From: Haplodiscus bocki
Lineage: Eukaryota
Direction: 5' to 3'
NCBI GenBank assembly: GCA_965655095.1
Contig: OZ296650.1
Span: forward strand, 133,858,001-133,922,000
Length of the DNA: 64,000 nt
Below, in pieces: positions 520 through 43,496 of this stretch. Made by a program: the position numbers and the translations under genes. The notes below the pieces were generated by a model that saw only the letters and a list, made by a program, of their open reading frames with translations, did not search any database and was not told the DNA's origin. Position 1 is the stretch's first letter; the number at the start of each line of letters is the position of its first letter.

Positions 520-681
520 GCTGTTATTGAAGCATAAAAAACTCTCCAGTTAACTCTTCCAACTCCGGATTTGGTTACCAAAAACTTTAAACTATTGACA
601 CTGAGTAAAATGAATATGTTATGCACGAAATTTGTATCTACTCACTTGGTTCGGATGTTAAATGCATCAACCGTGTAATCA

Positions 682-23080: not shown

Positions 23081-26008
23081 TCATGTAAACAACTTCGACA
23101 ATCCATCACTCATAGACGCATCCACAGTTTTTCTTGTGCAGCGACGGAACCTTGGAAAAATTACAGGGTCCAAAAATTGCAGCAAAGGAAAAATCGCATT
23201 ATCACCACCAGCTGAATCAGATATGGATCGACACAGTTGAGGAGAGATGCAAAATAAAGTTTGCAACAACGACAAAAAGTGAGTCTTGCAGCTCAAAATT
23301 TTTGGAGGAGAGGAACCAAACGAATTCGGAGGCTGAGCGAACGTCACAGACTTGAATTTTGCGCATAAGCGTTGTCCATCAGTCAATCCAGGAGAACTGA
23401 ATAAACGATACGTATCCGTTATAGACACACTTGTTGATGCGGAAAGAGAAGCAGCCGACTGTTCAATGTTCGGTTTACTTTGAATGCCTTGTCGGATTTC
23501 ATCAGTTGTTTCGCCAGAAGACACTAAGCTATTCAAAAAATATTGAATATCGCTTCGGTAAAAACTACATTGAGATTCCGCCTTCACTAACAGATCCGAA
23601 GTAATATCCCAACGGCGTTGAGAGCTCAAGCGAATGCTACTAATGCCTGAATAATTACCGACAGCTTTCAGCAACTGGAAAGTGTGACTAGCGTAATTCG
23701 CTTTGGCATTCTTCAAAATACGCAAATTTGGAGCAACAAATGCTAATCTGTCGTTGGTAGGAACACTGAGACGTCCCAGAGACGGGTGTGCAGGCGGGTG
23801 AAGATACTGCAGGTGAGACCCATTGTTATGCTGCACACAAGTTCCGATAACAAGGCCATATGCCCCATTAACACTGACAAAGCCGGAAACATCAAACGCA
23901 TCCAAAACTTTCATTGGTTTCAACCAATCGTCTCTTGCACCTCGCAAATGGTACAAGTAATCAGAGCTGAACGATGTGAATGAAGGCAAAATCCCATTTA
24001 CAAGGTGGTTGAAACCGATTCGACCTGTTTCTTCAACAAATGTGAAACAACCGAAGGGACATCTACAATTTGGATAACATTCATTATCTAAGGCTTCCTC
24101 CAAATCAGTGAAATTACCCGAATTTATTTTGTCCAGAAAAACTTCCTTCCGTTTTGTTATATCAACTAGAACAGATGGATCACCCATAGAAACAGCAGGA
24201 TGCAGATGTTGACACATAGCCCAACTGTCGCGTATTTCGGGAGGTAAAAAAGAAACAAATTTTTTCATAGTACAATCTCGAATGCTGAGATCCTTCAGTA
24301 ACGAATGAATCACGGAAGGCCAAGCGTACCGCCAACAATTTCCGCCATTATTGTAATTGAAACAACTTTGGCAGACCAGACAGGTAGCAGTAGGTCGCAA
24401 ACCAAATCTCCTTCGTTTGTTTGCTGTTTTTTCAAGAGTTTGCCATTGCAAAGGATAAGCAGGAGTTGAAATTCGACAACATTTACCGCACATTTCTCTG
24501 TTTTGTGCTTTGTCGGCTGAAAAAGTGGACGTCAAAACACAATTGTCACTCGAGGCATCCTCATTACGACAGGCGTTATCTTTCTTCATAATCATTGTGG
24601 CTGTGCCATTGTGTGCGGATTGCGTGGATTGAATCTCCTGAGGCAGGGCATTGAAGCAAACACCTGGGCTCAACGGGTCACACTTAGAACCATTTTCTTC
24701 ACATTCAATTGTCGCTAGGCTTAAACAACTGTTGCTGGGCAACAAAAGGTCGTTGTGCATACCGCCCAATCCAACAGAGGGTGATGTGAGGCCTTCATCG
24801 CACAAATGAGGCAAAACTTTAAATTCAGAACACGCACTACCTTTTGGATCAGAAGTGTTCGCATGAAATGACGCGGAAATCACATTGCATTGTGATGCCG
24901 TATCTGGGAATGAACTCTGGACGCAACCATGAGGCAAACTTTGCTGTGAATTTGGATTTTCTGCCGACAACACTGCTACCGTTTCAAAATGGTTACCTGT
25001 ATGAGTATGTACCAGGAAGACAGATGGAACGTCCATTGAAGCACGATCTCCGGCATAGCTATAAACTATCCACAATTTTGTCATGCAATGGTAAACGTAA
25101 ACATCAGCCACCGCAATTTGGGCGAAAGCATAGATCTCTACACAAGTGCCATACACACCATTCGATCTCATTCCGGAACGATTCAAATATTCGTTCACGT
25201 TTGAAGCTGTCTCTACCACAACATTTCCATCAATGGTTGTGTAAATTTCCAGAAAATGCGGAGCAATATCTACGGAGGGTAAAGCCAAACAAATACGCTG
25301 GCGTAGTTGTGAATGATACCAATATTGTGACCCAATTGACACCGCTAAAGCAGAGAACAAACAATTACCGTCACCTGGAACAGGATGAGTTTGTGATGGA
25401 TGCAAACTGTTCAAAGATTTGGCACCCAACAAGTGTGTGTTCAATGGTTTTGCCACAAACGGTATTCCAAACACAATGCAAATTCTCGTCAAATTAGCGA
25501 TTGTGCATGAAAAAGCTGTTGAATTCGGCACGTTCGAGAAAAGACTCATGGTATTGAATGGCGCAGAAAACAGCGACCGATCAAAATAGTCTTCACCAAC
25601 TGAGGCTTTTACCATGGATGATTGGAAACAGGAGCAGTCTTTGCTGCCATAAAAACGCCCACATGTTACGCATTTCCTGGGCTCTCTGCACAATTTCTTT
25701 TTTTTTGGCGGGCCAGGGTTGGTTTCTATACCACTTCTCAACAGAAACAAAAGTAACATTCTGCGAGTCATCGAAACCTCATCAGAATTGCCGATCCTCA
25801 TAAACTGCAAGTGATCCTGAAGACACAAAGAGACACAAAATTCCCCAACGGTGACGTCTGAGCTGAAGACTTCTCCGACATTGTTCACATAAACAATTCC
25901 ATCTTTTTCCAAAACTGTCCATAAAGAAGACCAAATCATCAACAAAGTTAAACAAAGTGAGTAAACCATTTTCTGAAAATGAGATTCGTCAAAACTCTGT
26001 ACACCCAT
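23081..26008 (-). CDS. N-terminal polyprotein, copy B: leader, 2A-like, OTU protease, Cys-rich domain; truncated by a nonsense codon
   Basis: LLRSGIETNPGP, and OTU motifs GDGNCLFSAL...YGTCVEI...NHF. First ATG at 26008. The codon is AGA in copies C/D and TGA here. Confidence 0.8.
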   Translation of the reverse strand: MGVQSFDESHFQKMVYSLCLTLLMIWSSLWTVLEKDGIVYVNNVGEVFSSDVTVGEFCVSLCLQDHLQFMRIGNSDEVSMTRRMLLLFLLRSGIETNPGPPKKKKLCREPRKCVTCGRFYGSKDCSCFQSSMVKASVGEDYFDRSLFSAPFNTMSLFSNVPNSTAFSCTIANLTRICIVFGIPFVAKPLNTHLLGAKSLNSLHPSQTHPVPGDGNCLFSALAVSIGSQYWYHSQLRQRICLALPSVDIAPHFLEIYTTIDGNVVVETASNVNEYLNRSGMRSNGVYGTCVEIYAFAQIAVADVYVYHCMTKLWIVYSYAGDRASMDVPSVFLVHTHTGNHFETVAVLSAENPNSQQSLPHGCVQSSFPDTASQCNVISASFHANTSDPKGSACSEFKVLPHLCDEGLTSPSVGLGGMHNDLLLPSNSCLSLATIECEENGSKCDPLSPGVCFNALPQEIQSTQSAHNGTATMIMKKDNACRNEDASSDNCVLTSTFSADKAQNREMCGKCCRISTPAYPLQWQTLEKTANKRRRFGLRPTATCLVCQSCFNYNNGGNCWRYAWPSVIHSLLKDLSIRDCTMKKFVSFLPPEIRDSWAMCQHLHPAVSMGDPSVLVDITKRKEVFLDKINSGNFTDLEEALDNECYPNCRCPFGCFTFVEETGRIGFNHLVNGILPSFTSFSSDYLYHLRGARDDWLKPMKVLDAFDVSGFVSVNGAYGLVIGTCVQHNNGSHLQYLHPPAHPSLGRLSVPTNDRLAFVAPNLRILKNAKANYASHTFQLLKAVGNYSGISSIRLSSQRRWDITSDLLVKAESQCSFYRSDIQYFLNSLVSSGETTDEIRQGIQSKPNIEQSAASLSASTSVSITDTYRLFSSPGLTDGQRLCAKFKSVTFAQPPNSFGSSPPKILSCKTHFLSLLQTLFCISPQLCRSISDSAGGDNAIFPLLQFLDPVIFPRFRRCTRKTVDASMSDGLSKLFT
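25709..25771 (-). other. 2A-like (StopGo) peptide ..MLLLFLLRSGIETNPG/P (core also at 10704-10727, 40703-40726, 55455-55478)
   Basis: Matches the (D/G)(V/I)ExNPGP consensus and has a Leu-rich upstream helix. Confidence 0.75.
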
Positions 26009-28745
26009 CAACACTCAGTGGCGGCGCCTACATCTATAAAACTCAGTCAATGAAGGCTTTGAAACAGCCACATGCGTTACAGAAAAATCTTCTATCGAAA
26101 GGAACTTCAAAAACAGTTGGATCATTTGAATTCAAAAGATTCACTGCATTGAATATTTGAAGTTCACCAGTTGAATTTTTAACTGTCTCTTCAGTGACTT
26201 TTCGTTTTTAATGCCGAAAATACCATGCTTGTGTGATTTCAGCAAGACTTGCAGTACTTGAAAAAATGATTAGTTAAATACGATTCAAATTCAAAACAAT
26301 GAGGACTGTTAGCGTTGTACACCAAACAAAACAAACTGCTGAGTAAGTATACTCTCAAAATATTCCTTGTCGAATGCCAAAGTGGTGCTTGTTGAACGCC
26401 AACCATAAACTGACCAAAAAAATTAACAATTACATAACACACTCCAACTTACAAGGCATGAAAGAGGTTCAACTCTCGTAATGCAAACGTGGAAAGTTCC
26501 AACACTGCTGATTTCTACAAAAAAACATAACAAGGAAAACGAAAGAACCTCATAGATGCTCAGAACAATAATATAACAAACTTAAAATTTCTGGCAAACA
26601 ATTGAAATGGAATGCAAAACTTATTGCCAAAACTTTTATTTTTATTTTTCAAAATGAATGACACGTAATGGAAGCATCTATTGCATTCTACAACCAACAA
26701 AGAGCCCTGATCCAAGATATAATTTATGTATGCCATTATACTTGATGAGAAAAAATGTAGGATTATAAAATATAACTTACATAAGTAACGCCTAACTAGA
26801 TTAAATTTGAGTTTAGCTGAAAAAACTGTGTCATATGAGACAAAATACTGTCAAAGTGTCAACGACCACTTGTGTAGAAGCTGCGAAACATTGTTAGCCG
26901 CATTTTACGCGCAAGACGATCAATTCCAGCGTTTTTAGGCGCTTTTTACGAGCAAAGCGATCCTTTCCCGGGAAAAATTTTTTTTCTCACAAAAATATCC
27001 GTCATTTCCGTCATTTTTTTCCCGTCATATCCGTCATTTTTTTTCGGCATTTCGACCGAAAATTTCTGGTTAACCGAAATCAATTGCCGCTTCAGTTTTG
27101 GCATCCTTAGCGAAGGCTAGCTTACGGGAAAAAGTTGGTTTTGGCGATCAAAAATGACGGAATGACGCATTTTTTGCAAAAATTTACAAATTCATCAGCG
27201 CCTATCTCCCGAACAAAAAAAGCTGGGCCAAAAATTTTTGGCATGCAAATTGTTCAAATCATTTGTGCCTCACACACAAAATTTGGGCCAATTGTATCGG
27301 GTAGATGTGGAACTAAAGCGATGAGAAGTCAAAATCGGGACAAAAAACACGATCATTCCGTCATAACTCATCACGTTGTGAATGGAAAAAGTTTTTTCCC
27401 TCCTCCCCTTTCTCACTTGGCCATTTGAGGACCGCATGCAATTTATGAATAAATTCTATCGGGTAGGACCCGAGATCGGCTTCCCAGACCCCTAGTGCAC
27501 CTAGATGAAAATTTATCGACTAATATTTAACCTCGGCAACGGGACCCTACCCGGCCTCGGATTCTAAAAAGGTTACATCCCTGACCACCCAGTGGAGGCA
27601 AAGGTACCGTTCGCTAGAGAGGCCCAGTGAATGTTGGATAGGTATCTGTGGACACCAACTGAAATGGAGTTTTGTCATAAAAGTAAAAAAAATTAACTCT
27701 CAATCTCAACAGAACAGAAGCTAAAACCGTTCAAGAAATGAACAACAATAGCCAAAACGGAAAAATAGATCCGACTTTATCAAAGAAAAACCCCTGAGTA
27801 AAAGAACTTTTTCCAACTCCTATTGAAAAAACCAGGTCCAAAAATAACAATTAAATTTTGAGAAGAAACATAAAACTCAAAACAGCTGTTTATGAAAAAT
27901 TTCAAAGCTCCTACACGTTTTCCCATTTATAAATGTTCCTAAAAGATCGATATGTCTACATAGCAAAACGAGGCTCACACACTGCAAAATTCGCTGAACC
28001 TTCTTTACTGTCTTATTTTAAACGAGAATTTCATCTCCGTTTAATCACTGCGACATTTTGAACAAAGACAACATAGACTTCTGTGAGCGTACCACTGACT
28101 TGGGACATCGAAATGACTTCACGGCTCATGCAAACTATAAATCGTTGCTATTCACAGTGAATCTCTTTTAGAACTTTGAACACTTTCAAAGTATTTTCAT
28201 TTGTTCCTCCAACTTTATGAGTAAACTATTTGAACACGAGGCAAATCGCGAACCAAAAGTTCCTATCTAATTTGAGTACGTTAAATTTATCAATATGTTG
28301 ACAAATTGGAGCAAATATATCTTCTAATACTAATGATAGCATCATTATTGAGAGGCCACTGACTTAAGAAAATTACTTCCAAAGTGCTTTACTAACATTG
28401 AAAAGCGTAGTGAAAATTTCATAAAACCTTCAACGTGGATTATTGAAGTAAATCGAACTACTTTACAGAGAATAATGCAGGGTACTGCCATAACGAAACA
28501 AGATTTATTTAGGTGAGAGAAAAACAGTTGTTTGTTTCATTGTAAAGTTTGTGGAAAGAAGGTTTAAATGTAAAAGAGACCATGTAAAGTTGAGTTGCTA
28601 AGGCAACTGCGTTGAATTCATCGACGGCACTACAGAATAACAATAGATGTGAAACTTTCAAAAAGGAACATCCTTCTATATGTTCATTCTCATTCGACTT
28701 CAAAAAGCACATATCCGTAGGGGATTTTGAAAAATCCATAACAAA

Positions 28746-29738
28746 TCAATCGTGCTGAACATTCGGGTTGGCATGCTGTAGTGGAGGTGGCCGATTGGGC
28801 GGTTGCCGAGCATTACCAATAGTGTACTTCAAGTTGTTCGGGATTACCGAAGCTGGCATAAGACGACAAATTCGCACATGATGAACAGCTTGAGTAATTG
28901 ACTCATCACTGACACTGGATTTGCTGTAGCCAGATATTCTCCAACCACCATTATCGTTGACATATGCTGTCACCCTAGTCATTGATTCACGCAACAGATT
29001 CAATTCAACCGAGCTAGCTGGCAATCGAAGAACGTCATTGCTGCAAAAGAACGATGCCAACTGATGACTTTGGGTCATGTCTCCGCTCAGGGGATCGTCC
29101 GCTTCTTCTTCCACGTCCCTAGAAATGATGCGTGCGGCGACAGTCCACGACGAAACTGAATTCTTGTGTAAGCAAGCGCACACCGTTTCATTTCTGAGAA
29201 TACGACGGTCGCACATACTTCCAGAACACGTAGGTGATATAATGTTTCCATGCAAAAACAACAAATTTCTACTGTTGAGAGTGTAATGGAACATTGCGGG
29301 CGTGCTCGGTAGGGAAATAATTGGAATTGGCGGAAAATCCTCATTGCTTACGTTATTGATAACAACGATCGCCTGATGAGTTTCAATAATCGGATTATTT
29401 TTGTCATTCCCTAAACACGTGTTCGAATATATAGGCTCTGTAACCTCTACAACAGAACCAACAGTCAGATGACGATCCGAAAACAGTTTAGCAGACTTCT
29501 GCGCGGAAACTGAGATGACGACAAAACAATCTTTACTATTCCATTGACCAATAATAGCCATTCTGTCATATGTCCCTTCAGGAAGTGGTCGTTTCAATTT
29601 TGTAGCTTGAGGTCTAAACAACTGAAGTGGCCGATCACTTTTTTTCAGAACCAAAACTATCCCCCTTATTACAGTGTTCTGGCTGTTGCGCAGGAAACCT
29701 TCGCCTGTAACTTCAGCAACAGTTACTTGTCTATTCAT
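28746..29738 (-). CDS. 330-aa putative OB-fold/Zn accessory protein (copy C)
   Basis: Same protein as 13741-14733. Confidence 0.6.
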   Translation of the reverse strand: MNRQVTVAEVTGEGFLRNSQNTVIRGIVLVLKKSDRPLQLFRPQATKLKRPLPEGTYDRMAIIGQWNSKDCFVVISVSAQKSAKLFSDRHLTVGSVVEVTEPIYSNTCLGNDKNNPIIETHQAIVVINNVSNEDFPPIPIISLPSTPAMFHYTLNSRNLLFLHGNIISPTCSGSMCDRRILRNETVCACLHKNSVSSWTVAARIISRDVEEEADDPLSGDMTQSHQLASFFCSNDVLRLPASSVELNLLRESMTRVTAYVNDNGGWRISGYSKSSVSDESITQAVHHVRICRLMPASVIPNNLKYTIGNARQPPNRPPPLQHANPNVQHD

Positions 29739-30681
29739 TTCTTAAAAAATGCAAAAGGATGTGTTTCAAACGAGGAAGTACACGATAAAAAACACAAGTC
29801 AAGATTTGCAGTCTGATTTCTCTCAAACGGAAAAACGCCCAATGAACAAAGAAAAATTTTTGATGAAAGAAAACTTTAGAAAATCCGTTTTTTTATTAAA
29901 GCCTAGCAACTCTTCAGTCCCGTCTATGGTACACTTTGTCTGGAATCAACTGAATCTGCAGTCATTTATCGGGTGTGTCCTCAAAACAGTTTTCCACTCC
30001 AAGTCAAAAATTGGTCGCATACCGAAAACATATAAATTGAAACACAGATAGTACATTAAACTGAATTTCCTCTGAACTATTTCTATTTCCAAAAACAAAA
30101 CAATTTACAACAGATTCCAGTAAAAAAACCTGCATGCCAAAAGGATATAAACAAAATGCCAAAAAAGCGTTCAGCTTCAAATAACATCATCAAATGTAAA
30201 ATCATAGTTCAACTAAATGAATGCAATATTGCCAATTCATTTTTTACATTTAAAAACCATATGGCAGCACAAATAGTGCAATTAAACAATAACACCAAAT
30301 CATGACAGAAATGACCGCATTACAAATATTCACGCGGTGTTAAAACACCGACGGACTTCCTAATCATCAAGTTATCTTCATGGAGCTCGCGGTAATTGAT
30401 GCCTATGCCGATTCGTGAAACTCACATCTGTTTCTTTTGACCTGCAAGAAACAGATAATCTTGAAATAGTTCGCAGAGGACTTGCTTGTTTTCACGATGA
30501 ATCGTGAAAACAAGCAAGTGCTGTTATTGAAGCATAAAAAACTCTCCAGTTAACTCTTCCAACTCCGGATTTGGTTACCAAAAACTTTAAACTATTGACA
30601 CTGAGTAAAGTGAATATGTTATGCACGAAATTTGTATCTACTCACTTGGTTCGGATGTTAAATGCATCAACCGTGTAATCA

Positions 30682-31335
30682 CTAACGTTCCGGTTTTCTT
30701 TCAAAAATTGTGGCAAAAATATGTTGCTGCTTATCTTCGAAATTGTCAATAAAACAGAAACCAAAAACTAAAACACTAACTTTGTTTCGGAGATTATTGC
30801 TTCTATTGCGGCACCGACGCAAAGTCAAATCCTGCAAACCATTGTTCAACAGTGTTCTGGATAGCATATGATTCTCTAACAAGCTATTCAGGTGCAGATC
30901 GTTACTTTCATCAAGTAAAAGTTTGTACCGTTTTGATAGAATCGATTTCATTTTCAAAAAAATAATTCCTGTTGGACAATTTTCCAAGAGCTCGTTTAAA
31001 TTATGCGCTCCTGATCGTGGTAAGTAGGAAAAAGCCACGACATTGAATTTTCTCAAGTACGCCAGTTTACTGAAAAAAGCCTCAGGACTCATTGCCGGAT
31101 TCTTCTTGCTTGACAAAGAGTTATTGACAGCATCATGCCAAATGATAACCTTTCTTCCATTAGTGTTGCAGGAATTCGATTGAAGAAGATAACAAATGTT
31201 TTTTTCTGGTTGGTAGTTATTTAGCGAAGCACCAGAAATTGCACAAAATTGTGACTTGAAAGGATCAAAGAGGTAAGGTTTCTCCTGAGCTGCCCAATAA
31301 AGGGAAGAGGCCGCCAAAACAAAATATTCAGACAT
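30682..31335 (-). CDS. SGNH-like accessory protein (copy C)
   Basis: One substitution (R>S) relative to copy A. Confidence 0.55.
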   Translation of the reverse strand: MSEYFVLAASSLYWAAQEKPYLFDPFKSQFCAISGASLNNYQPEKNICYLLQSNSCNTNGRKVIIWHDAVNNSLSSKKNPAMSPEAFFSKLAYLRKFNVVAFSYLPRSGAHNLNELLENCPTGIIFLKMKSILSKRYKLLLDESNDLHLNSLLENHMLSRTLLNNGLQDLTLRRCRNRSNNLRNKVSVLVFGFCFIDNFEDKQQHIFATIFERKPER

Positions 31336-32676
31336 AACAACCGGAAACCGAAAGACAATGTATTATGAAAACAAACAAACGAACGAAACATACTTTATAT
31401 TGTTTACTTTGCAATTAGAAAAACCTACTCAAACTCCAGAATCTCCTTCCATTCATGTCATTTGCTTATTAGAACAAAAACGAAGTCAAACAAAAATTCA
31501 CAACGGTCACACAGCTACAGAGTCGTCAAAACGGTCAAAAATCAGAAATGTTCTTTGAGGAAAGGAAATTTTATAAAAAATACAATAGCCACATACCCGA
31601 AGAATGAAAATCTCACTCAAACAACTCGATATGCACGAAATAAGAGCCCCTCTTTAATCGCTGCAAAGAAGTACATAGTGGTGAAACACTTCAATTCACA
31701 AAAGTAACGATAATAAAAAAGCTTCTCATAAAACAAATGATAGAGCGTTTAATGACTTGAAAGAAAAAGTGTTCACAGCTTCCGTAACAAGGAATATGGA
31801 ATGGATTTGAAAGGTGCCGCGCTACAAATGAACTCCGCTGCTATCTCTTTATGTTTCCAGGCCAGTTTGTAGAACATGGGTTGCTGGACAACCAACTCAT
31901 ATACGTTCATCTAACAAACAACATTCTAATTGAGAACTTGCGTCGGCGGTTGCTGAGCAACCAGCAAAACAAAACATGAAAGCTAAATTGCCTCCGTCAG
32001 CTATAAAAAAAATAAATCATTATATGAGTCAGAATTAACATCTAAAACAGCTCACAGTCAGTGATACAATCACAAAACATAAACAGCAATGTCACATTGT
32101 AGAAACCCCGTCACATTCTCTTGCAGTTGACAATTTTTTCAATAAATTTCTGCACTGATTACCGAACAAAAAGTTAAACCCCTATAGCGTCTGAAATATT
32201 GGAAACAATCTCCCAAAAACATCAAAACAGCTCCTTCAGTGTAATTACAGACACATGTCAAAACAAATTATGGCGGAAAAGGATTGTATGATTCTTTCAA
32301 TTACCGTGTGATATAATTGTGTACGTTATTCCATAAAGTATCATAGCATAAAAGTTCGATCACGAATCTAAACAAAGTTACTCAGTGAGTCCAACGAAAA
32401 GGTGATAAAAATGAAAACGACATCCCGTTACAAAATTAATCTTCCAACTATTACAACACATCCTCTTTTTCAAAGGTTGGCTCAAAACCAACAGCAAACA
32501 ATGGCAAAGAATCAAATCAATCAACATGATTGGCTACAAAAATTATTTGCTGAAAAGTTGGTTTCGGACAAACCAATGTTCAGGAATACTTTTGAAATAC
32601 AATCGGTTTTCTCGATGGCAGTTTTACAAAAGTCTAAATCGTTGTAGACAATTACATATGAACAATCAAATAAACA

Positions 32677-35600
32677 CTAAAAATTCTGCATGCAATCACA
32701 TTCCAGGGCTGTTTCGATACCTGTAACTTTATACAAATCCATAAGAACATGGCATTCTGACAAGTAATCTGCAAGCGTTAGCATCACATTCGAATATTTG
32801 TGATTAACCATTGCTCTTTGCCAATCCTGTTCGAAAGAGTAACGGCTTCGGGAAACAGCGTTGGAAAACCCCGTCACGTAAGCAACTAAAGCCCAGGGTC
32901 TTCTTTCAACAGGCTTTGTAAATGCGCTCCCATTTCCCGAATTATGCTCCTGCAATCGTCGCCGCAACGTCTTACAGCTTCCAATGTAAAAAAGTTCCCT
33001 GCGTTTAACGCTCACCAACAAATAACAGTAACCAATTGCCGAAAGGGGTACATCAAAAACACGTAAAGGAAAGGGATAAAATGTCTGGATCGCTGAAACA
33101 CCGGAATTACAACTGCCACGAGACGACAAAAAGTTATCTATCAAAGGTACCAAATGGCTATCTTTGCGGCAAAGAAGATTAATTGCATCAAGTGTACGCT
33201 GCTTGTCACCGACAAACGTTATATGGGAAAGATCAGTGACCCGACTAACAACTACATAAAGCTGCTCTTTCAGCCAGTAGGAAAATTTTTTACCACCAAC
33301 AATCTGTGTTGCCAAGCTTGGAACAGTGTCACCCATTATTTTGTGAACCGTTGACGCCACATACATTTTCAAAGGAAACTGAACACGTCTGCAAACGGTA
33401 GAATTGCTATACTTATGGAGAACGCCAATTCTTTTACGAACAACTACAAGTCTCCAGGAATTAACGTCCGGGTTGTTAGATGACACAGACCTTACTCCGG
33501 CTGGTGCAACTCTCACAACAATATGAGGATCATTTTCATCGAACGATTCAACTAAACACAATTGTCCCTGGAACAGTTTCAGCGATGGCAAATTGCAAGT
33601 TAAGCGCAATACACACCCAACATGTATAAACAAAGACTCTGGCTCAAGGCAACTTCGGTTGAGGAACTTGCTGACGGGTGCTGTTGCGGTAACCCAATTC
33701 TGGGTTCCTGTATTTGACATTTCATCCTTGCAATGGAAAGACACACTCTGTATGTTTTGATGTGTTGTCACAAACGATATTCTCTCTTCCACGGCCTCTT
33801 TTTCCGCAACTCGCGTACTGAACACTCTCAAAATATCCAGAGGGACTTCCGTCCACGTGCTTACAAAAATACAGAACTTGTCAATGATCTCACAACACTC
33901 CTTAATACATGCTTCTGTCACAGGATATTCAGACAGCAAATCCAGAAGTCTCTTTCCTTGCTGGTTCTGCATCCTCACATAGTGCTTCAAATACCGAACC
34001 TCGAAATTAGCTAACACCGAGTTGCTCAGCAAAAGGAACGTTCCCGTAGGAGGCGGAAGTTGACGAAAATCACCTGTGCAAATAACAATCTTTCCTCCAA
34101 AAGGAAGATTGTTTTCAGACACGGCTTGCAACACATTGTCCATTGCGGACCAAAGTTCAGCTGAAATCATTGAGACTTCCTCGACAAATAAAACATCCAA
34201 CCTCTCCAAAAAAGTAAATTTTAGAGGATCTCGGGCAAGAGTGTTCAATGCATGCGAAACTAGATGAGTCACCGTTCCATTTTGAACGACAGGGAAAGGG
34301 ATTAAAGCGTTTATGTGTCTTCCGCCGAAAAGTGAAGCTCTCTCCGCAGCGACACTAGTTATGACGCATCTCAATCCCCTAGCTAGAGCCGCGATCACAC
34401 AATGGATCAACACATGGCTCTTTCCTGTACCTGGTGGACCAACTATGAACTGATGTTTAATAAAGGCAGTCGTACAAGAACAATAATTATCGTACAAAGA
34501 ACAAACGTAATCCAAAATATTCTGTTGATCATGCAATGATTCGTCAGTCTGGTTGCGCGCTTTATGTATCTTCTGGCTCCAAGTAAAAGGACGTGCTAAG
34601 GTGGCGTTCATCAATTCTGCATACGTTGGTAAACCACCATAACCCCCATTGGCAATGGCACACAGAAGACTCTCTTTCTGCGCATTTAATTCGTGTGAAA
34701 TATTGCTGTCACTCTGCTGCACAATACTCTGTTCTAAGACGCGCGGTGTTGAGCACGGAAAAACGACCGAATTATTTTGTGCTGCTTGCTGGATGCACAA
34801 ATAGGCACTCGTAACAAATCGATCTAGTAAAGTAGATGATCCTGGATAATAGCGTAATTGTTCAAGCACAAAGCGCCGAACAACATCAATAACTTCGGAA
34901 TCTTCGCATCCCAAATGAGACCTCGCTAAAGAAGCCTCAAAGAACGCAGATTTCATATTCGATTGAGAAAAAATGTCAAGTTCGGTTACGTATTCTCCAA
35001 GAGACAACAGAATGTGGGTCAAAAAATTGGTTGTGTTCCTCGGAACAACGTTCGATAAAACTACTTGAGTTTGACAAACCTTTTTGTCATAAATGAACTT
35101 GTGACTTGAACTGCTCGTTGTACATGCAATGGCTTCATGACATTGCCTGGAGAAACGACGGACCCCACTAGAAAAGTTGCGACAGTAGTTGAAAAAAGCT
35201 TCTTTGTACAAAGCATTAAGGTATATGCAATAGCCGAGGCCATCCACCCAATATGATTTGGTTACATTTCTCTTTAGTAAACTTTCTGGTGTCAACTTTG
35301 AGGGCTTTCGGAAGCGGCAGAACCAAGTAAAATAGTTTTCCACTTTGAGCACAAAAGTTAGTTCAGGGGGTCGTACACCAAAAACTGTTATCTTGTCTGG
35401 AGAAAGAGAACTTTTTTCTGCATCAATTATCAGCAGCTTCTGATTAACCGTGAAGCAACGGTGAGGAGGAAAGTCCTTGCTGTGTCTAATGGAACTCTGG
35501 CGCCCAAAAAGAGGACCCTGATTGCTACTAGAAAGCCTGCATTTCGGTTCAATGACTATTCCAGCCCGTTTCTCTCGCGGGGCAGTGACAACATGAATGA

Positions 35601-38600
35601 ATTGTATATTGGTCACCACGTAAGGAAATCGCAATGACCACCACACGGATTCCGTTAAACTCAAAATGCGAGAGTTCAAACACTTTTTCTTTGGCTTTTC
35701 CTCCTTGCTCATATTGGTCAAGTATACCCCAGCGATTTTGTTGTTCACTTGTTGATCAACATGGAAGTCATACAAATCTGTTGCACTTGACGTAGAAATA
35801 GAAACTTCGGCGCGTTCCTCCACGTCTGCAACATATTTTGACAGATAACGGCTACTCATGTAAATGTCGCAAATTTGTAGATTGGTGCTAGATCGGACGA
35901 GGGCAAAAATTTTGGCGTTTGTTGGAGAAGTGTGCGTGTTACTTTCTGTTGGATAATGATGCTTGCCACCACAAAGGCGCTGATCAATGGTGACAGAACA
36001 ATCAAAGTCACTCGACTCAGCTAATCCGATGTTCTTCAAAACTGCTATCGTTTCCTCAGACAGTTCTTTGTGAATACATTTGTAGGTAAAATTAGCAGAA
36101 GGAGGGTATTTGGGCACGCGGCACGTTTTTCTTTTCAATTTGTCAGTTTTTTTCTGACAACGAAATTTAGCTTTAAAACAGCTGTGTGATTGGTAACGGT
36201 TGAACAGATCTCGTAACTCGTTCAACTCATCCAAACTATAATTGTGCGAACCAACTTCAGTCAATAAATTCCCCAGAAACGTTGTTGCCGAGCAACAAAT
36301 TCTAGACCTTACTGCTTCACTAAAGCAATCTTCTGCCGTCCAAATCAAAGCATGTACATGAGGGAACCCACAAGCTTCATCTTGAAACTCATACCGATAC
36401 CAAATCTTTTTAACCTTTCCCAATGGCTGCTCGGGTGACGTTTCAATGTACTTCATGACAAGACGAGAAGCTCGTTCCCACGCTCTCAACATGGTGACCA
36501 TTTCAGATTGAATCGCTGATTTTCGGACCTCCTCTTTACAGACGTCTTTCGGAAACTTTGCGTCCAACGCACTAAAAATCTTCCTCAAGCCAGGATGCGT
36601 TGACTGCCCACAAGTGTAAGTGAAAAAATATGTAGCTGGTCGTTCTTTCAAAGCTGCTCCCAATTCATTGACATTCTTCCGAGAATCGCATTGATCAAAA
36701 AAAATTGCCCCTTCTCGCATGGCATGTACATTTTTTCGTTGCCGAGCGGCTTCACTCCAACCTCTGTTCAATACTATTCTGGTGTCATTGACACGCAGCT
36801 GTAGGTTAAATATTGTGTCAAATACGTATTGGACGTAACGAGGATCCGTTGACGTCAACAGAGACGAATCTTTCAAGCGCGTTTGTAAATGTTGTTCTAA
36901 GCTAGCGAAGCCGAGCAATTCGTTTTGTTTGTGATCATTATACAAAGGAGACGGTATTGCACCCGAATAACTGCCGTCTGTATTTTGGTGCCAAAAGATG
37001 GACGGAAACAACATGGCTTCCGGCTGAAGCAAAGGGACAGAATTAGGGGGCGACGTTGCAGTGATATTCTCCAGAAATCTCTTATGTCTAGCTGCAACAT
37101 ACAACGGAGACCCTTTACTCCTTTTCAGTAAACCGCATTGACCATTCAATAAAACATGTAGTGGGAGCTGAAAATCAGTGCTGTCTATTCGGAAATCACG
37201 TTCCAAAACAACAGTTGAATCTCCAGCAGCAGTTGTAACAGGCAGCGAAACATGCGATCCCTCAGAATCTTCCTCTAAAAGGCCAGGGTTGGTAACAAAT
37301 TCCGAGGACGCGACAGTGTTGGTAGGCGATGTGGACCGATTCTCTGAATCGACAGAAACACGGCTATAGCTACAATCATCTAACTGACTTGAGCCGCACG
37401 CTGAGTTTTTTGTGGACTCACCAAAGATCCTTTTTTTACCATCAAAAACAAAGTGCTTTTCCTGACTTTCATCTTCAGAATGCATCCTGCAAACACTTGC
37501 CAAACAACCAGACACTGGACAACGTAAAAAAGAACTTCTACCACATGAGCATTTGAAACCACTTGAAGGAAAATCACGGGTGAGTAACAGAGAATGCTTT
37601 TTACAAAAGAATTTTCCTTGACCTGCCAGTGTTTCAAAATATTTCGACCGCAACTCACTAATATCGGCAAAGGTCTGTCGATAGTAAACACAGATATTCC
37701 AATAGTCATTAATAAAATGATCAACCGCTCTATCACAAGGCAGCCTCACCTGTTCAGGAAAAATACTTTTGCTTTTATACACCCAAAAACTTTGAAAGAC
37801 ACCACCATGCCTCAAAAGAATGTTATTACGAGTCGCTAAACCTTCAGTAGCAATAAATTTCAACTCGAAAACGGACTGAGCAGTTTGGAAGTTCAGAGGA
37901 GCTTTGAATTTAGAACGCAAAGTATTTACTCCCGCGTATGAAAAAAGTATGACATTTACACCTTCAAATTCTTGAGCTTCCAAAAAATGCCAAATATCTT
38001 GACGGCTTGCCACGTTTTCATGGATGACATCATCACAAAATTGTGACACACCGAAACTGAGACAACGAGATGGACTTTCCGGAAATCTTGTAAACAACTT
38101 CGACAATCCATCACTCATAGACGCATCCACAGTTTTCCTTGTGCAGCGACGGAACCTTGGAAAAATTACAGGGTCCAAAAATTGCAGCAAAGGAAAAATC
38201 GCATTATCAACACCAGCTGAATCAGATATGGATCGACACAGTTGAGGAGAGATGCAAAATAAAGTTTGCAACAACGACAAAAAGTGAGTCTTGCAGCTCA
38301 AAATTTTTGGAGGAGAGGAACCAAACGAATTCGGAGGCTGAGCGAACGTCACAGACTTGAATTTTGCGCATAAGCGTTGTCCATCAGTCAATCCAGGAGA
38401 ACTGAATAAACGATACGTATCCGTTATAGACACACTTGTTGATGCGGAAAGAGAAGCAGCCGACTGTTCAATGTTCGGTTTACTTTGAATGCCTTGTCGG
38501 ATTTCATCAGTTGTTTCGCCAGAAGACACTAAGCTATTCAAAAAATATTGAATATCGCTTCGGTAAAAACTACATTGAGATTCCGCCTTCACTAACAGAT

Positions 38601-39924
38601 CCGAAGTAATATCCCAACGGCGTTGAGAGCTCAAGCGAATGCTACTAATGCCTGAATAATTACCGACAGCTTTCAGCAACTGGAAAGTGTGACTAGCGTA
38701 ATTCGCTTTGGCATTCTTCAAAATACGCAAATTTGGAGCAACAAATGCTAATCTGTCGTTGGTAGGAACACTGAGACGTCCCAGAGACGGGTGTGCAGGC
38801 GGGTGAAGATACTGCAGGTGAGACCCATTGTTATGCTGCACACAAGTTCCGATAACAAGGCCATATGCCCCATTAACACTGACAAAGCCGGAAACATCAA
38901 ACGCATCCAAAACTTTCATTGGTTTCAACCAATCGTCTCTTGCACCTCGCAAATGGTACAAGTAATCAGAGCTGAACGATGTGAATGAAGGCAAAATCCC
39001 ATTTACAAGGTGGTTGAAACCGATTCGACCTGTTTCTTCAACAAATGTGAAACAACCGAAGGGACATCTACAATTTGGATAACATTCATTATCTAAGGCT
39101 TCCTCCAAATCAGTGAAATTACCCGAATTTATTTTGTCCAGAAAAACTTCCTTCCGTTTTGTTATATCAACTAGAACAGATGGATCACCCATAGAAACAG
39201 CAGGATGCAGATGTTGACACATAGCCCAACTGTCGCGTATTTCGGGAGGTAAAAAAGAAACAAATTTTTTCATAGTACAATCTCGAATGCTGAGATCCTT
39301 CAGTAACGAATGAATCACGGAAGGCCAAGCGTACCGCCAACAATTTCCGCCATTATTGTAATTGAAACAACTTTGGCAGACCAGACAGGTAGCAGTAGGT
39401 CGCAAACCAAATCTCCTTCGTTTGATTGCTGTTTTTTCAAGAGTTTGCCATTGCAAAGGATAAGCAGGAGTTGAAATTCGACAACATTTACCGCACATTT
39501 CTCTGTTTTGTGCTTTGTCGGCTGAAAAAGTGGACGTCAAAACACAATTGTCACTCGAGGCATCCTCATTACGACAGGCGTTATCTTTCTTCATAATCAT
39601 TGTGGCTGTGCCATTGTGTGCGGATTGCGTGGATTGAATCTCCTGAGGCAGGGCATTGAAGCAAACACCTGGGCTCAACGGGTCACACTTAGAACCATTT
39701 TCTTCACATTCAATTGTCGCTAGGCTTAAACAACTGTTGCTGGGCAACAAAAGGTCGTTGTGCATACCGCCCAATCCAACAGAGGGTGATGTGAGGCCTT
39801 CATCGCACAAATGAGGCAAAACTTTAAATTCAGAACAGGCACTACCTTTTGGATCAGAAGTGTTCGCATGAAATGACATTGCATTGTGATGCCGTATCTG
39901 GGAATGAACTCTGGACGCAACCAT
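32677..39924 (-). CDS. Helitron-like RepHel transposase with C-terminal SLX1-type GIY-YIG nuclease (2415 aa; OTU lost by frameshift)
   Basis: Uninterrupted ORF with Rep motif 1 PATYFFTYTC, motif 2 EFQ..PHVHALIW, motif 3 YLSKY, PIF1 helicase motifs and GIY-YIG. Confidence 0.92.
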   Translation of the reverse strand: MVASRVHSQIRHHNAMSFHANTSDPKGSACSEFKVLPHLCDEGLTSPSVGLGGMHNDLLLPSNSCLSLATIECEENGSKCDPLSPGVCFNALPQEIQSTQSAHNGTATMIMKKDNACRNEDASSDNCVLTSTFSADKAQNREMCGKCCRISTPAYPLQWQTLEKTAIKRRRFGLRPTATCLVCQSCFNYNNGGNCWRYAWPSVIHSLLKDLSIRDCTMKKFVSFLPPEIRDSWAMCQHLHPAVSMGDPSVLVDITKRKEVFLDKINSGNFTDLEEALDNECYPNCRCPFGCFTFVEETGRIGFNHLVNGILPSFTSFSSDYLYHLRGARDDWLKPMKVLDAFDVSGFVSVNGAYGLVIGTCVQHNNGSHLQYLHPPAHPSLGRLSVPTNDRLAFVAPNLRILKNAKANYASHTFQLLKAVGNYSGISSIRLSSQRRWDITSDLLVKAESQCSFYRSDIQYFLNSLVSSGETTDEIRQGIQSKPNIEQSAASLSASTSVSITDTYRLFSSPGLTDGQRLCAKFKSVTFAQPPNSFGSSPPKILSCKTHFLSLLQTLFCISPQLCRSISDSAGVDNAIFPLLQFLDPVIFPRFRRCTRKTVDASMSDGLSKLFTRFPESPSRCLSFGVSQFCDDVIHENVASRQDIWHFLEAQEFEGVNVILFSYAGVNTLRSKFKAPLNFQTAQSVFELKFIATEGLATRNNILLRHGGVFQSFWVYKSKSIFPEQVRLPCDRAVDHFINDYWNICVYYRQTFADISELRSKYFETLAGQGKFFCKKHSLLLTRDFPSSGFKCSCGRSSFLRCPVSGCLASVCRMHSEDESQEKHFVFDGKKRIFGESTKNSACGSSQLDDCSYSRVSVDSENRSTSPTNTVASSEFVTNPGLLEEDSEGSHVSLPVTTAAGDSTVVLERDFRIDSTDFQLPLHVLLNGQCGLLKRSKGSPLYVAARHKRFLENITATSPPNSVPLLQPEAMLFPSIFWHQNTDGSYSGAIPSPLYNDHKQNELLGFASLEQHLQTRLKDSSLLTSTDPRYVQYVFDTIFNLQLRVNDTRIVLNRGWSEAARQRKNVHAMREGAIFFDQCDSRKNVNELGAALKERPATYFFTYTCGQSTHPGLRKIFSALDAKFPKDVCKEEVRKSAIQSEMVTMLRAWERASRLVMKYIETSPEQPLGKVKKIWYRYEFQDEACGFPHVHALIWTAEDCFSEAVRSRICCSATTFLGNLLTEVGSHNYSLDELNELRDLFNRYQSHSCFKAKFRCQKKTDKLKRKTCRVPKYPPSANFTYKCIHKELSEETIAVLKNIGLAESSDFDCSVTIDQRLCGGKHHYPTESNTHTSPTNAKIFALVRSSTNLQICDIYMSSRYLSKYVADVEERAEVSISTSSATDLYDFHVDQQVNNKIAGVYLTNMSKEEKPKKKCLNSRILSLTESVWWSLRFPYVVTNIQFIHVVTAPREKRAGIVIEPKCRLSSSNQGPLFGRQSSIRHSKDFPPHRCFTVNQKLLIIDAEKSSLSPDKITVFGVRPPELTFVLKVENYFTWFCRFRKPSKLTPESLLKRNVTKSYWVDGLGYCIYLNALYKEAFFNYCRNFSSGVRRFSRQCHEAIACTTSSSSHKFIYDKKVCQTQVVLSNVVPRNTTNFLTHILLSLGEYVTELDIFSQSNMKSAFFEASLARSHLGCEDSEVIDVVRRFVLEQLRYYPGSSTLLDRFVTSAYLCIQQAAQNNSVVFPCSTPRVLEQSIVQQSDSNISHELNAQKESLLCAIANGGYGGLPTYAELMNATLARPFTWSQKIHKARNQTDESLHDQQNILDYVCSLYDNYCSCTTAFIKHQFIVGPPGTGKSHVLIHCVIAALARGLRCVITSVAAERASLFGGRHINALIPFPVVQNGTVTHLVSHALNTLARDPLKFTFLERLDVLFVEEVSMISAELWSAMDNVLQAVSENNLPFGGKIVICTGDFRQLPPPTGTFLLLSNSVLANFEVRYLKHYVRMQNQQGKRLLDLLSEYPVTEACIKECCEIIDKFCIFVSTWTEVPLDILRVFSTRVAEKEAVEERISFVTTHQNIQSVSFHCKDEMSNTGTQNWVTATAPVSKFLNRSCLEPESLFIHVGCVLRLTCNLPSLKLFQGQLCLVESFDENDPHIVVRVAPAGVRSVSSNNPDVNSWRLVVVRKRIGVLHKYSNSTVCRRVQFPLKMYVASTVHKIMGDTVPSLATQIVGGKKFSYWLKEQLYVVVSRVTDLSHITFVGDKQRTLDAINLLCRKDSHLVPLIDNFLSSRGSCNSGVSAIQTFYPFPLRVFDVPLSAIGYCYLLVSVKRRELFYIGSCKTLRRRLQEHNSGNGSAFTKPVERRPWALVAYVTGFSNAVSRSRYSFEQDWQRAMVNHKYSNVMLTLADYLSECHVLMDLYKVTGIETALECDCMQNF

Positions 39925-41002
39925 GAGGCAAACTTTGCTGTGAATTTGGATTTTCTGCCGACAACACTGCTACCGTTTCAAAATGGTTACCTGTATGAGT
40001 ATGTACGAGGAAGACAGATGGAACGTCCATTGAAGCACGATCTCCGGCATAGCTATAAACTATCCACAATTTTGTCATGCAATGGTAAACGTAAACATCA
40101 GCCACCGCAATTTGGGCGAAAGCATAGATCTCTACACAAGTGCCATACACACCATTCGATCTCATTCCGGAACGATTCAAATATTCGTTCACGTTTGAAG
40201 CTGTCTCTACCACAACATTTCCATCAATGGTTGTGTAAATTTCCAGAAAATGCGGAGCAATATCTACGGAGGGTAAAGCCAAACAAATACGCTGGCGTAG
40301 TTGTGAATGATACCAATATTGTGACCCAATTGACACCGCTAAAGCAGAGAACAAACAATTACCGTCACCTGGAACAGGATGAGTTTGTGATGGATGCAAA
40401 CTGTTCAAAGATTTGGCACCCAACAAGTGTGTGTTCAATGGTTTTGCCACAAACGGTATTCCAAACACAATGCAAATTCTCGTCAAATTAGCGGTTGTGC
40501 ATGAAAAAGCTGTTGAATTCGGCACGTTCGAGAAAAGACTCATGGTATTGAATGGCGCAGAAAACAGCGACCGATCAAAATAGTCTTCACCAACTGAGGC
40601 TTTTACCATGGATGATTGGAAACAGGAGCAGTCTTTGCTGCCATAAAAACGCCCACATGTTACGCATTTCCTGGGCTCTCTGCACAATTTCTTTTTTTTT
40701 GGCGGGCCAGGGTTGGTTTCTATACCACTTCTCAACAGAAACAAAAGTAACATTCTGCGAGTCATCGAAACCTCATCAGAATTGCCGATCCTCATAAACT
40801 GCAAGTGATCCTGAAGACACAAAGAGACACAAAATTCCCCAACGGTGACGTCTGAGCTGAAGACTTCTCCGACATTGTTCACATAAACAATTCCATCTTT
40901 TTCCAAAACTGTCCATAAAGAAGACCAAATCATCAACAAAGTTAAACAAAGTGAGTAAACCATTTTCTGAAAATGAGATTCGTCAAAACTCTGTACACCC
41001 AT
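39854..41002 (-). CDS. Leader-2A-OTU protease fragment, copy C, separated from RepHel by the 11-bp deletion
   Basis: 384-aa ORF containing GIETNPGP and the OTU Cys/His boxes. Confidence 0.75.
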   Translation of the reverse strand: MGVQSFDESHFQKMVYSLCLTLLMIWSSLWTVLEKDGIVYVNNVGEVFSSDVTVGEFCVSLCLQDHLQFMRIGNSDEVSMTRRMLLLFLLRSGIETNPGPPKKKKLCREPRKCVTCGRFYGSKDCSCFQSSMVKASVGEDYFDRSLFSAPFNTMSLFSNVPNSTAFSCTTANLTRICIVFGIPFVAKPLNTHLLGAKSLNSLHPSQTHPVPGDGNCLFSALAVSIGSQYWYHSQLRQRICLALPSVDIAPHFLEIYTTIDGNVVVETASNVNEYLNRSGMRSNGVYGTCVEIYAFAQIAVADVYVYHCMTKLWIVYSYAGDRASMDVPSVFLVHTHTGNHFETVAVLSAENPNSQQSLPHGCVQSSFPDTASQCNVISCEHF

Positions 41003-43496
41003 CAACACTCAGTGGCGGCGCCTACATCTATAAAACTCAGTCAATGAAGGCTTTGAAACAGCCACATGCGTTACAGAAAAATCTTCTATCGAAAGGAACT
41101 TCAAAAACAGTTGGATCATTTGAATTCAAAAGATTCACTGCATTGAATATTTGAAGTTCACCAGTTGAATTTTTAACTGTCTCTTCAGTGACTTTTCGTT
41201 TTTAATGCCGAAAATACCATGCTTGTGTGATTTCAGCAAGACTTGCAGTACTTGAAAAAATGATTAGTTAAATACGATTCAAATTCAAAACAATGAGGAC
41301 TGTTAGCGTTGTACACCAAACAAAACAAACTGCTGAGTAAGTATACTCTCAAAATATTCCTTGTCGAATGCCAAAGTGGTGCTTGTTGAACGCCAACCAT
41401 AAACTGACCAAAAAAATTAACAATTACATAACACACTCCAACTTACAAGGCATGAAAGAGGTTCAACTCTCGTAATGCAAACGTGGAAAGTTCCAACACT
41501 GCTGATTTCTACAAAAAAACATAACAAGGAAAACGAAAGAACCTCATAGATGCTCAGAACAATAATATAACAAACTTAAAATTTCTGGCAAACAATTGAA
41601 ATGGAATGCAAAACTTATTGCCAAAACTTTTATTTTTATTTTTCAAAATGAATGACACGTAATGGAAGCATCTATTGCATTCTACAACCAACAAAGAGCC
41701 CTGATCCAAGATATAATTTATGTATGCCATTATACTTGATGAGAAAAAATGTAGGATTATAAAATATAACTTACATAAGTAACGCCTAACTAGATTAAAT
41801 TTGAGTTTAGCTGAAAAAACTGTGTCATATGAGACAAAATACTGTCAAAGTGTCAACGACCACTTGTGTAGAAGCTGCGAAGCATTGTTAGCCGCATTTT
41901 ACGCGCAAAACGATCAATTCCAGCGTTTTTAGGCGCTTTTTACGCGCAAAGCGATCCTTTCCCGGGAAAATTTTTTTTTTCTCACAAAAATATCCGTCAT
42001 TTCCGTCATTTTTTTCCCGCATATCCGTCATTTTTTTTCGGCATTTCGATCGAAAATTTCTGGTTAACCGAAATCAATTGCCGGTTCAGTTTTGGCATCC
42101 TTAGCGAAGGCTAGCATACGAGAAAAAGTTGGTTTTGGCGATCAAAAATGACGGAATGACGCATTTTTTGCAAAAATTTACAAATTCATCAGCGCCTATC
42201 TCCCGAACAAAAAAAGCTGGGCCAAAAATTTTTGGCATGCAAATTGTTCAAATCATTTGTGCCTCACACACAAAATTTGGGCCAATTGTATCGGGTAGAT
42301 GTGGAACTAAAGCGATGAGAATTCAAAATCGGGACAAAAAACACGATCATTCCGTCATAACTCATCACGTTGTGAATGGAAAAAGTTTTTTCCCTCCTCC
42401 CCTTTCTCACCTCGCCATTTGAGGACCGCATGCAAATTATGAATAAATTCTATCGGGTAGGACCCGAGATCGGCTTCCCAGACCCCTAGTGCACCTAGAT
42501 GAAAATTTATCGACTAATATTTAACCTCGGCAACGGGACCCTACCCGGCCTCGGATTCTAAAAAGGTTACATCCCTGACCACCCAGGTCCAAAAATAACA
42601 ATTAAATTTTGAGAAGAAACATAAAACTCAAATCAGCTGTTTATGAAAAATTTCAAAGCTCCTACACGTTTTCCCATTTATAAATGTTCCTAAAAGATCG
42701 ATATGTCTACATAGCAAAACGAGGCTCACACACTGCAAAATTCGCTCAACCTTCTTTACTGTCTTATTTTAAACGAGAATTTCATCTCCGTTTAATCACT
42801 GCGACATTTTGAACAAAGACAACATAGACTTCTGTGAGCGTACCACTGACTTGGGACATCGAAATGACTTCACGGCTCATGCAAACTATAAATCGTTGCT
42901 ATTCACAGTGAATCTCTTTTAGAACTTTGAACACTTTCAAAGTATTTTCATTTGTTCCTCCAACTTTATGAGTAAACTATTTGAACACGAGGCAAATCGC
43001 GAACCAAAAGTTCCTATCTAATTTGAGTACGTTAAATTTATCAATATGTTGACAAATTGGAGCAAATATATCTTCTAATACTAATGATAGCATCATTATT
43101 GAGAGGCCACTGACTTAAGAAAATTACTTCCAAAGTGCTTTACTAACATTGAAAAGCGTAGTGAAAATTTCATAAAACCTTCAACGTGGATTATTGAAGT
43201 AAATCGAACTACTTTACAGAGAATAATGCAGGGTACTGCCATAACGAAACAAGATTTATTTAGGTGAGAGAAAAACAGTTGTTTGTTTCATTGTAAAGTT
43301 TGTGGAAAGAAGGTTTAAATGTAAAAGAGACCATGTAAAGTTGAGTTGCTAAGGCAACTGCGTTGAATTCATCGACGGCACTACAGAATAACAATAGATG
43401 TGAAACTTTCAAAAAGGAACATCCTTCTATATGTTCATTCTCATTCGACTTCAAAAAGCACATATCCGTAGGGGATTTTGAAAAATCCATAACAAA

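Follow-up and report, generated by a model that had tools for sequence, protein, structure and literature searches.

Does the 15-kb unit described here belong to a known family of eukaryotic rolling-circle transposons, or does it stand for a lineage of its own? It lies in a stretch of 64,000 nucleotides (nt) from the Haplodiscus bocki assembly GCA_965655095.1 (contig OZ296650.1, positions 133,858,001 to 133,922,000, forward strand), hereafter the window, whose letters include no N. A sequence-only reading of the window had proposed, at 27600-42586, a self-amplifying element that combines a 2A-like motif, an OTU protease domain, a HUH/Y2 Rep, a PIF1 helicase and a GIY-YIG nuclease, and that carries two accessory genes behind them. 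These limits lie 4-11 nt off the joints that we derive at 27589 and 42582. We conclude that the element is likely a rolling-circle DNA transposon of the Helitron-like kind, autonomous and active in recent times, and that it belongs to a large and deeply separate clade. The element and the parts of its main protein are as follows.

27589..42582, minus strand: unit 3, the element under study (14,994 bp; 5' end 42582, 3' end 27589; joints within 1-2 nt, from unit alignment and junction reading)
32677..39924, minus strand: main open reading frame (ORF), 2415 amino acids in unit 3, with a Cys-rich N-terminal region, Rep, PIF1 helicase and GIY-YIG domains
35725..36702, minus strand: Rep (HUH/Y2) domain, with the HUH motif PHVHALIW at 36340-36363 and the Y2 motif YLSKY at 35824-35847
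33205..34497, minus strand: PIF1-type SF1B helicase, with the Walker A motif GPPGTGKS at 34417-34440
32812..33033, minus strand: C-terminal GIY-YIG nuclease domain of SLX1 (URI) type

The main protein and its family

A Pfam search of the 2415-amino-acid ORF detects Helitron_like_N (amino acids 1095-1194, E-value 1e-7), PIF1 (E-value 3e-13) and GIY-YIG (amino acids 2298-2371, E-value 2e-9). Together with motif reading, Pfam confirms that 2A, OTU, HUH/Y2 Rep, PIF1 and GIY-YIG do occur in one unit. Five Rep residues (H115, H117, Y286, K289 and Y290) show no change among 16 diverse members, and the language-model neighbours of this domain are all Helitron_like_N. The helicase follows Rep in the same ORF and matches the PIF1 helicases in the Protein Data Bank (PDB) as well as the helicase of Helraiser; classical Helitrons have their Rep motifs (motif I, HUH, Y-x3-Y) in the same order and a collinear helicase.

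The nearest solved structures to the GIY-YIG domain are those of SLX1 (E-value 2e-10), and the residues G.Y, Y.G, R, HN and E..W are kept across 128 representatives. Judged by these matches and conserved residues, the domain is a predicted nuclease of SLX1 type. The protein is not an SLX1 orthologue, because no RING/PHD domain follows and because it is fused to a helicase. The expectation that a GIY-YIG nuclease would occupy the place of the Helentron AP endonuclease is borne out by the Pfam and structure-database matches, which put an SLX1-type domain after the helicase. At the other end of the protein, about 1000 amino acids between OTU and Rep (36703-39924, minus strand; main-ORF amino acids 1-1074) are conserved throughout the subclade and contain Cys/His clusters such as CGKCCR…CLVCQSC; no Pfam family was found for this region.

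How widespread is this architecture? A word-based search recovered 23 full-length relatives at 25-58% identity, all with the same Rep-PIF1-GIY-YIG order, one of them an uncharacterized protein of Styela clava. A profile built from 16 members (trimmed alignment) was searched against 1.84 billion cluster representatives (50% clusters). At E-values up to 1e-30, 1028 representatives match this Rep-helicase profile, a count that may include other Helitrons; the best 150 of the 1028 all belong to the family described here and cover the whole profile, with E-values up to 1e-166. Members that carry a name are called either "uncharacterized protein" (two proteins of Styela clava) or "predicted GIY-YIG superfamily endonuclease" (JGI). 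A Pfam scan of the window protein and of four relatives puts the GIY-YIG domain at the C-terminus in every case. Its treatment as a lineage trait holds up, since the tail is found clade-wide, in 128 of 168 family proteins and in 72 of the 82 with a length of 2100 amino acids or more; the other 10 stop at or just past the helicase. The weak profile matches P0024-P0027 contain no AP endonuclease. Among the metagenome contigs that carry distant relatives, certain sizes recur: about 20 kb in three, 22-24 kb in three and 15.2 kb in two.

In a FastTree phylogeny of 111 Rep-helicase regions, the family is split from four classical Helitron proteins, the sole outgroup, with an SH-like support of 99. 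The members with OTU form one clade, also with a support of 99. From these sequence comparisons, the Rep-PIF1-GIY-YIG core, together with the partner gene ORF330 described below, defines a large and practically undescribed clade.

Are the genes maintained? We calculated the ratio of nonsynonymous to synonymous substitutions (dN/dS) between the window element and a copy of 91-93% identity in another contig (ctg88836). For the N-terminal region and Rep the value is 0.27; the helicase has 0.20 and GIY-YIG 0.15, and the two accessory genes, ORF217 and ORF330, have 0.165 and 0.095. With dN/dS at 0.10-0.27 throughout, each part has been retained by purifying selection while the element spread.

The window element resembles canonical Helitrons (HLE1; Helraiser, PDB 7LCC) in its Rep motif order, its collinear helicase and a possible CTRR 3' end; it differs from them in a 5' end that is not TC, in having neither a 3' hairpin nor an A|T target, and in the addition of OTU and GIY-YIG. 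With Helentrons (HLE2) it shares a giant ORF that joins a HUH/Y2 Rep to a PIF1-type helicase, a nuclease behind the helicase, an upstream OTU, an accessory gene of putative single-strand-binding type and a tendency to form tandem arrays. Here, however, an SLX1-type GIY-YIG stands in place of the AP endonuclease (Exo_endo_phos), the partner gene is found downstream, a 2A leader and an SGNH gene are additional, and both Rep and helicase have diverged far from the Pfam models.

It is quite possible, if short of probable, that the element is a sub-lineage of Helentron/HLE2 in which the AP endonuclease has been swapped for a captured GIY-YIG, and that it nests within HLE2 as HelenSM92 does. The OTU upstream and the nuclease fused behind the helicase are arranged as in Helentrons, GIY-YIG has been reported in one HLE2 family, and Cnidaria are listed as hosts of HLE2 subgroup b (PMC11417382). 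HelenSM92, an HLE2 family of Sphagnum magellanicum for which a single sentence reports a captured GIY-YIG domain (PMC11417382), is the sole published Helitron-like precedent that we found for this domain. Our search of the literature on GIY-YIG in Helitrons or Helentrons returned only this mention, and no link to the SLX1 type. Compared by description only, HelenSM92 differs from the window element in being a plant family that inserts at TT/TT and has short inverted repeats at its termini (PMC11417382). What argues against such a nested position is that the GIY-YIG tail is clade-wide rather than a one-off capture, while OTU is present in only one subclade; that short terminal inverted repeats and T|T insertion are not seen, the joints being CTG(G)|G(G)TGG; and that the Pfam scores are far under those of ordinary Helitron-like elements. 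The earlier idea of a distinct and possibly undescribed self-amplifying lineage survives as a distinct rolling-circle clade, but its novelty is reduced by the GIY-YIG already noted in a Sphagnum HLE2 (PMC11417382). Two groups of Helitron-like elements are distinguished, in part through the accessory nuclease and the ends; a large and widespread GIY-YIG clade, with other ends and a conserved partner gene, would widen the scheme and would provide a natural experiment on the role of the extra nuclease in rolling-circle transposition.

Tandem units and their joints

The proposed 15-kb unit is real, but it is not solitary. Positions 1-57336 of the window are made up of four units of about 15 kb, arranged head-to-tail with a spacing of 14,751-15,006 bp, and every long ORF of this array is on the minus strand. 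Pairwise identity among the four units is 99.6-99.85%. Besides unit 3, the array has the following features.

1..12588, minus strand: unit 1, truncated by the window start; the main ORF holds a stop, the 11-bp frameshift is present, and 1 bp is inserted right after 2A
12589..27588, minus strand: unit 2, both ends complete (15,000 bp); OTU and Rep in frame, one stop codon at 23081-23083
42583..57336, minus strand: unit 4, whose 3'-terminal approximately 240 nt are deleted at the joint with unit 3, with CTGG microhomology
39875..39876, minus strand: site of an 11-bp indel; the 11 bp are absent in units 1, 3 and 4 and present in unit 2
27589..27599, minus strand: 3'-terminal 11-mer GCCTCCACTGG (element strand), which abuts GTGGTCAGGG, the 5' start of the next unit (27579-27588)
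57337..57372, minus strand: upstream neighbour of the array, with the terminal 11-mer and about 25 nt like the 3' end of another member (CTGGTAATT…ACC)

The lesions are spread over the units: a stop at 8086 and 23081, the 11-bp variant, and the 1-bp insertion just past 2A in units 1 and 4. OTU and Rep are out of frame in unit 3 because of the 11-bp deletion variant at 39875. In the two sequencing runs that resolve this site (X1 and X2), the 11 bp are the main contig form, and the array is also found in an independent ENA assembly, where an uninterrupted gene of 2778 amino acids keeps OTU and Rep in frame. The element is multicopy, with four copies in the window and further ones in other contigs, some of them within contigs of 0.5-0.9 Mb. 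The depth of unit words is high in all four sequencing runs examined, and fragments that are 90-95% alike are present in a coral metagenome run.

Where exactly do the units meet? On the element strand they join at …CGAACGGTACCTTTGCCTCCACTGG|GTGGTCAGGGATG… (the bar marks the joint), and in the window the 21-mer that spans this point is confined to unit joints. The consensus joint reads …GGTACCYTWGCCTCCACTG(G)|G(G)TGGTCAGGG…, with a 3' side of …CCACTG(G). A GGTACC palindrome lies at 27603-27608, near the 3' end of unit 3. The terminal motif recurs at joints in other contigs and also at the outer 3' end of an array in L003. One contig, ctg88836, is particularly informative: a copy of 99.7% identity, the copy of 91-93% identity and two non-coding units of 1051 bp follow one another, all joined at the same site. 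The two short units are 86% alike, and their likeness to the autonomous element is limited to the terminal motifs, the 5' 84 nt and an internal block of 29 nt. This array terminates as …GGTACCCTAGCCTCCACTGGGT|unrelated DNA; the end motif stands as GCCTCCACTGGGT|flank.

Two independent deletion joints add to this. At the joint of units 3 and 4, 244 bp are gone, and in a second contig (ctg77218) more is missing than that; both restart at (G)GTGGTCAGGG. The join, as placed by these deletion joints and by those between mixed units, is CTG(G)|G(G)TGG. As a 3' end, CTGG could match the CTRR rule of Helitrons, and the 5' end is GT or GG, not TC. As units of unlike age and kind meet at one nucleotide, insertion at the element's own joint is favoured over a single read-through event. 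The joints thus suggest insertion of the element into its own joint.

Could the host instead have built the array, by segmental duplication or unequal crossing-over of one insertion, so that it would tell us nothing about the mechanism of the element? We regard this as unlikely. The units are 99.6-99.85% identical, their variants pair them as would be expected of a doubled two-unit block, and the junction deletions carry microhomology. In another contig, however, units that are 9% apart and unrelated 1-kb elements share the exact joint, and the upstream neighbour of the window array also ends like a family member. The resemblance of that neighbour (57337-57372) is short, a 9-mer at the same offset, and a BLAST search of the array flank against the unit and the short units found no similarity beyond about 25 nt. 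The array may continue past 57348-57372 as a different, unrecognisable unit. Own-joint insertion and host duplication may also have acted together: single-base variants group units 1 and 2 against units 3 and 4 at many sites, as after duplication or conversion of a two-unit block, and this pairing indicates that block duplication also contributes. Apparent landing at the own joint suggests a testable route from a transposon to tandem, satellite-like DNA.

Several observations weigh against reading the element as an active Helitron-like transposon with defined ends. Each of the four window units has at least one frameshift or stop. The exact nick site is uncertain by 1-2 nt because of the microhomology, and the single outer 5' end and single outer 3' end that we see are at different loci. 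No stable 3' hairpin was found, the single-stranded DNA folding no better than shuffled sequences (z-scores 0.2-1.0), and a search for inverted repeats gave internal pairs only, with no terminal ones. Pfam scores are about 30 bits for Helitron_like_N and about 45 bits for PIF1, versus more than 200 for classical Helitrons, and the Rep of Helraiser is matched neither by sequence nor by the family profile.

More tentatively, the clade could be regarded as a third major lineage of eukaryotic rolling-circle elements beside HLE1 and HLE2 (HLE2 being compared by description only). It would be distinguished by a HUH nick at CTRG|GT, an SLX1-type nuclease, a single-strand-binding partner protein of its own and insertion at its own joint. 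One animal subclade may then have gained 2A, OTU and the esterase, and a transposon would be building satellite-like cassette arrays by itself.

How might such an element move? In the mechanism that we propose, Rep would nick at the conserved joint, leaving CTGG as the 3' end and GT or GG as the 5' end. The helicase would peel off the strand, which the ORF330 partner would coat. Rejoining at a target that resembles the element's own joint would then produce stacked arrays. The GIY-YIG nuclease may take the role proposed for the AP endonuclease of Helentrons and cut the target or the second strand.

The 2A leader, the OTU domain and the accessory genes

Which parts of the unit are additions to the Rep-PIF1-GIY-YIG core? 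Three further reading frames flank the main ORF.

39854..41008, minus strand: ORF with leader, 2A and OTU; first ATG 41002, 2A 40703-40759 (NPGP 40703-40714), OTU 39977-40372
30682..31335, minus strand: ORF217, an SGNH/GDSL-fold hydrolase-like protein, from structure model, fold search and invariant residues
28746..29738, minus strand: ORF330, a conserved partner with a Zn ribbon (invariant C-x4-CDR-x8-10-C-x-C)

The upstream ORF encodes, in order, a leader of about 100 amino acids, the peptide RRMLLLFLLRSGIETNPGP, a basic stretch and the OTU domain. The Pfam match to OTU (E-value 3e-4) falls slightly short of the Pfam cut-off, and the Cys box DGNCLF and the His box GNHFE are canonical. The 2A motif GIETNPGP, within LLLFLLRSGIETNPGP, has G in place of the D of D(V/I)ExNPG|P and is preceded by a hydrophobic, helix-prone stretch. 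The claim of a 2A-like motif gains support from six relatives (P0002-P0006 and P0016), in which the form (G/C/N)(I/V/L)ExNPGP recurs at the homologous position after L-rich residues. These six share just 43-58% Rep-helicase identity with the window element. The leader N-terminal to 2A is scarcely alignable among relatives, and relatives without a leader begin at the basic/CxxC stretch found after 2A. That the 2A position is kept while the leader diverges points to selection on the 2A peptide itself.

What would the 2A do? If active, it would free the short leader, and the transposase would then start with Pro and the basic stretch, which is likely a nuclear-localisation signal. 2A-like peptides have been described at the N-terminus of ORFs of non-LTR retrotransposons (PMC3708506). 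The likeness lies in a motif (D/G)(V/I)ExNPGP near the start of the main ORF of a cellular mobile element; the difference is that the carrier here is a rolling-circle DNA transposon. We found no literature linking 2A peptides to Helitrons. A conserved 2A in a DNA transposon is apparently unreported, and ribosome skipping, of which few cellular uses are known, would gain another.

The proposal of virus-like polyprotein processing finds no support. A single 2A would free only a short and poorly conserved leader, and no capsid, polymerase or circular contig was found. Cleavage of the element's protein by OTU is unsupported, and release by 2A is not polyprotein processing. Nor do 2A and OTU mark the lineage, as had been suggested: OTU is limited to the clade of P0001-P0017 and 2A to a part of that clade, so that both are confined to one subclade, which has the SGNH-fold gene as well.

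One may still ask whether the unit is an integrated episomal rolling-circle replicon or a virus. Such a replicon would be consistent with one giant ORF of many domains, 2A and a protease domain among them, and with the many relatives that lie on metagenome contigs of recurring size (10-24 kb), flanked by uncharacterised ORFs. The single 2A, which would free the leader only, speaks against it. Tests for terminal overlap and inverted repeats in the contigs of five whole or near-whole relatives (9-24 kb) gave no sign of circularity, and Pfam searches of 10 ORFs neighbouring relatives found no capsid, polymerase or other family. With no terminal overlap, no Pfam family among the neighbours and copies inside contigs of 0.5-0.9 Mb, we rejected this explanation as very improbable.

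Both accessory ORFs are kept beside divergent relatives, at 33% identity for ORF217 (30682-31335, minus strand) and 45% for ORF330 (28746-29738, minus strand), as expected from the earlier description of them as conserved. Profiles of the ORF217 sequence match nothing in Pfam or the PDB, and its fold is seen by structure alone. An AlphaFold2 model from a 10-sequence alignment (pLDDT 77, pTM 0.73) was compared with the PDB by Foldseek, which gives a probability of 1.0 but an E-value of only 2e-3; the matches are predominantly SGNH/GDSL hydrolases, including PAF acetylhydrolase. In a VIA comparison, the top 50 rows are SGNH-type esterases or acyl-hydrolases, or designed scaffolds (Z 7.6-9.6, residues 1-169). 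S11, G35, N72 and H148 do not vary, D146 hardly varies, and the spacing between Asp and His is unusual for an SGNH hydrolase. The model match, with Z up to 9.6, and the invariant Ser, Gly, Asn and His agree with the earlier SGNH-like assignment. On this modelled structure, ORF217 is an SGNH/GDSL-fold protein with a predicted hydrolase activity. By analogy with the esterases of retrotransposons, it might act on membranes or lipids, and an SGNH esterase common to retrotransposons hints at a shared need of unrelated mobile elements.

Penelope-like elements and the Terminons of rotifers also have GIY-YIG nucleases, and Terminons have GDSL esterases and Rep-like genes in addition and are arranged head-to-tail in arrays (PMC6431247). 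These are reverse-transcriptase elements, whereas the window element has neither a reverse transcriptase nor a hammerhead.

ORF330 is a candidate, and probable, OB-fold single-strand-DNA binder of the RPA/POT1 type. Its language-model neighbours are POT1, CTC1, RPA and MEIOB, all OB-fold proteins that bind single-stranded DNA. Searches with its profiles A3 and A6 against the PDB and Pfam returned nothing meaningful, and a single-sequence AlphaFold2 model reaches a pLDDT of only 32. Because the model is poor and the profiles are empty, the earlier OB-like label is no more than a plausible lead: the language-model neighbours and the invariant Zn ribbon favour it, and no profile or fold match does.

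Conservation of this partner gene extends across the clade: genes similar to ORF330 also lie beside the distant members L005, L008 and L009. In L005 the partner (126-1523, minus strand, 465 amino acids) is upstream of the Rep-helicase gene and on the opposite strand, whereas in the window it is downstream. L008 (ERZ27290073, 20.7 kb) and L009 (ERZ23498577, 23.8 kb) have several uncharacterised ORFs besides it, and the ORFs L008_374 and L009_298 are homologous. The points of real interest in this element are the additions of 2A, OTU and SGNH and the stacking of units at their own joints.

The 5' non-coding region and the neighbouring element

Two features remain, one at the 5' end of the unit and one beyond the array.

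41009..42582, minus strand: 5' non-coding region, with five TCCGTCAT motifs at 41993-42358 and a block of about 30 nt (42335-42363) common to the 1-kb non-autonomous relatives
60513..64000, plus strand: divergent sister element, head-to-head with the array and leaving the window; open frame from OTU into the N-terminal region

The 8-mer TCCGTCAT occurs five times per unit within about 370 bp and on both strands; its 20 occurrences in the window, versus 1.5 expected, are inflated by the four copies. These repeats could be Rep-binding iterons or promoter (CRE-like) sites. At the block of about 30 nt (42331-42363 in the window), which recurs in the 1051-bp tandem units at L003:13779-15881, many read contigs branch and leave loose ends, namely at 42331 and at 42363. 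Compared with the rest of the unit, read depth is 2-3 times higher over 41940-42530. An Rfam scan of the unit found no RNA and no hammerhead.

Between 57348 and 60520 the terminal motif of the array is absent from either strand. The sister element that follows (60513-64000, plus strand) is without the 2A leader and shows about 40% identity to P0007.

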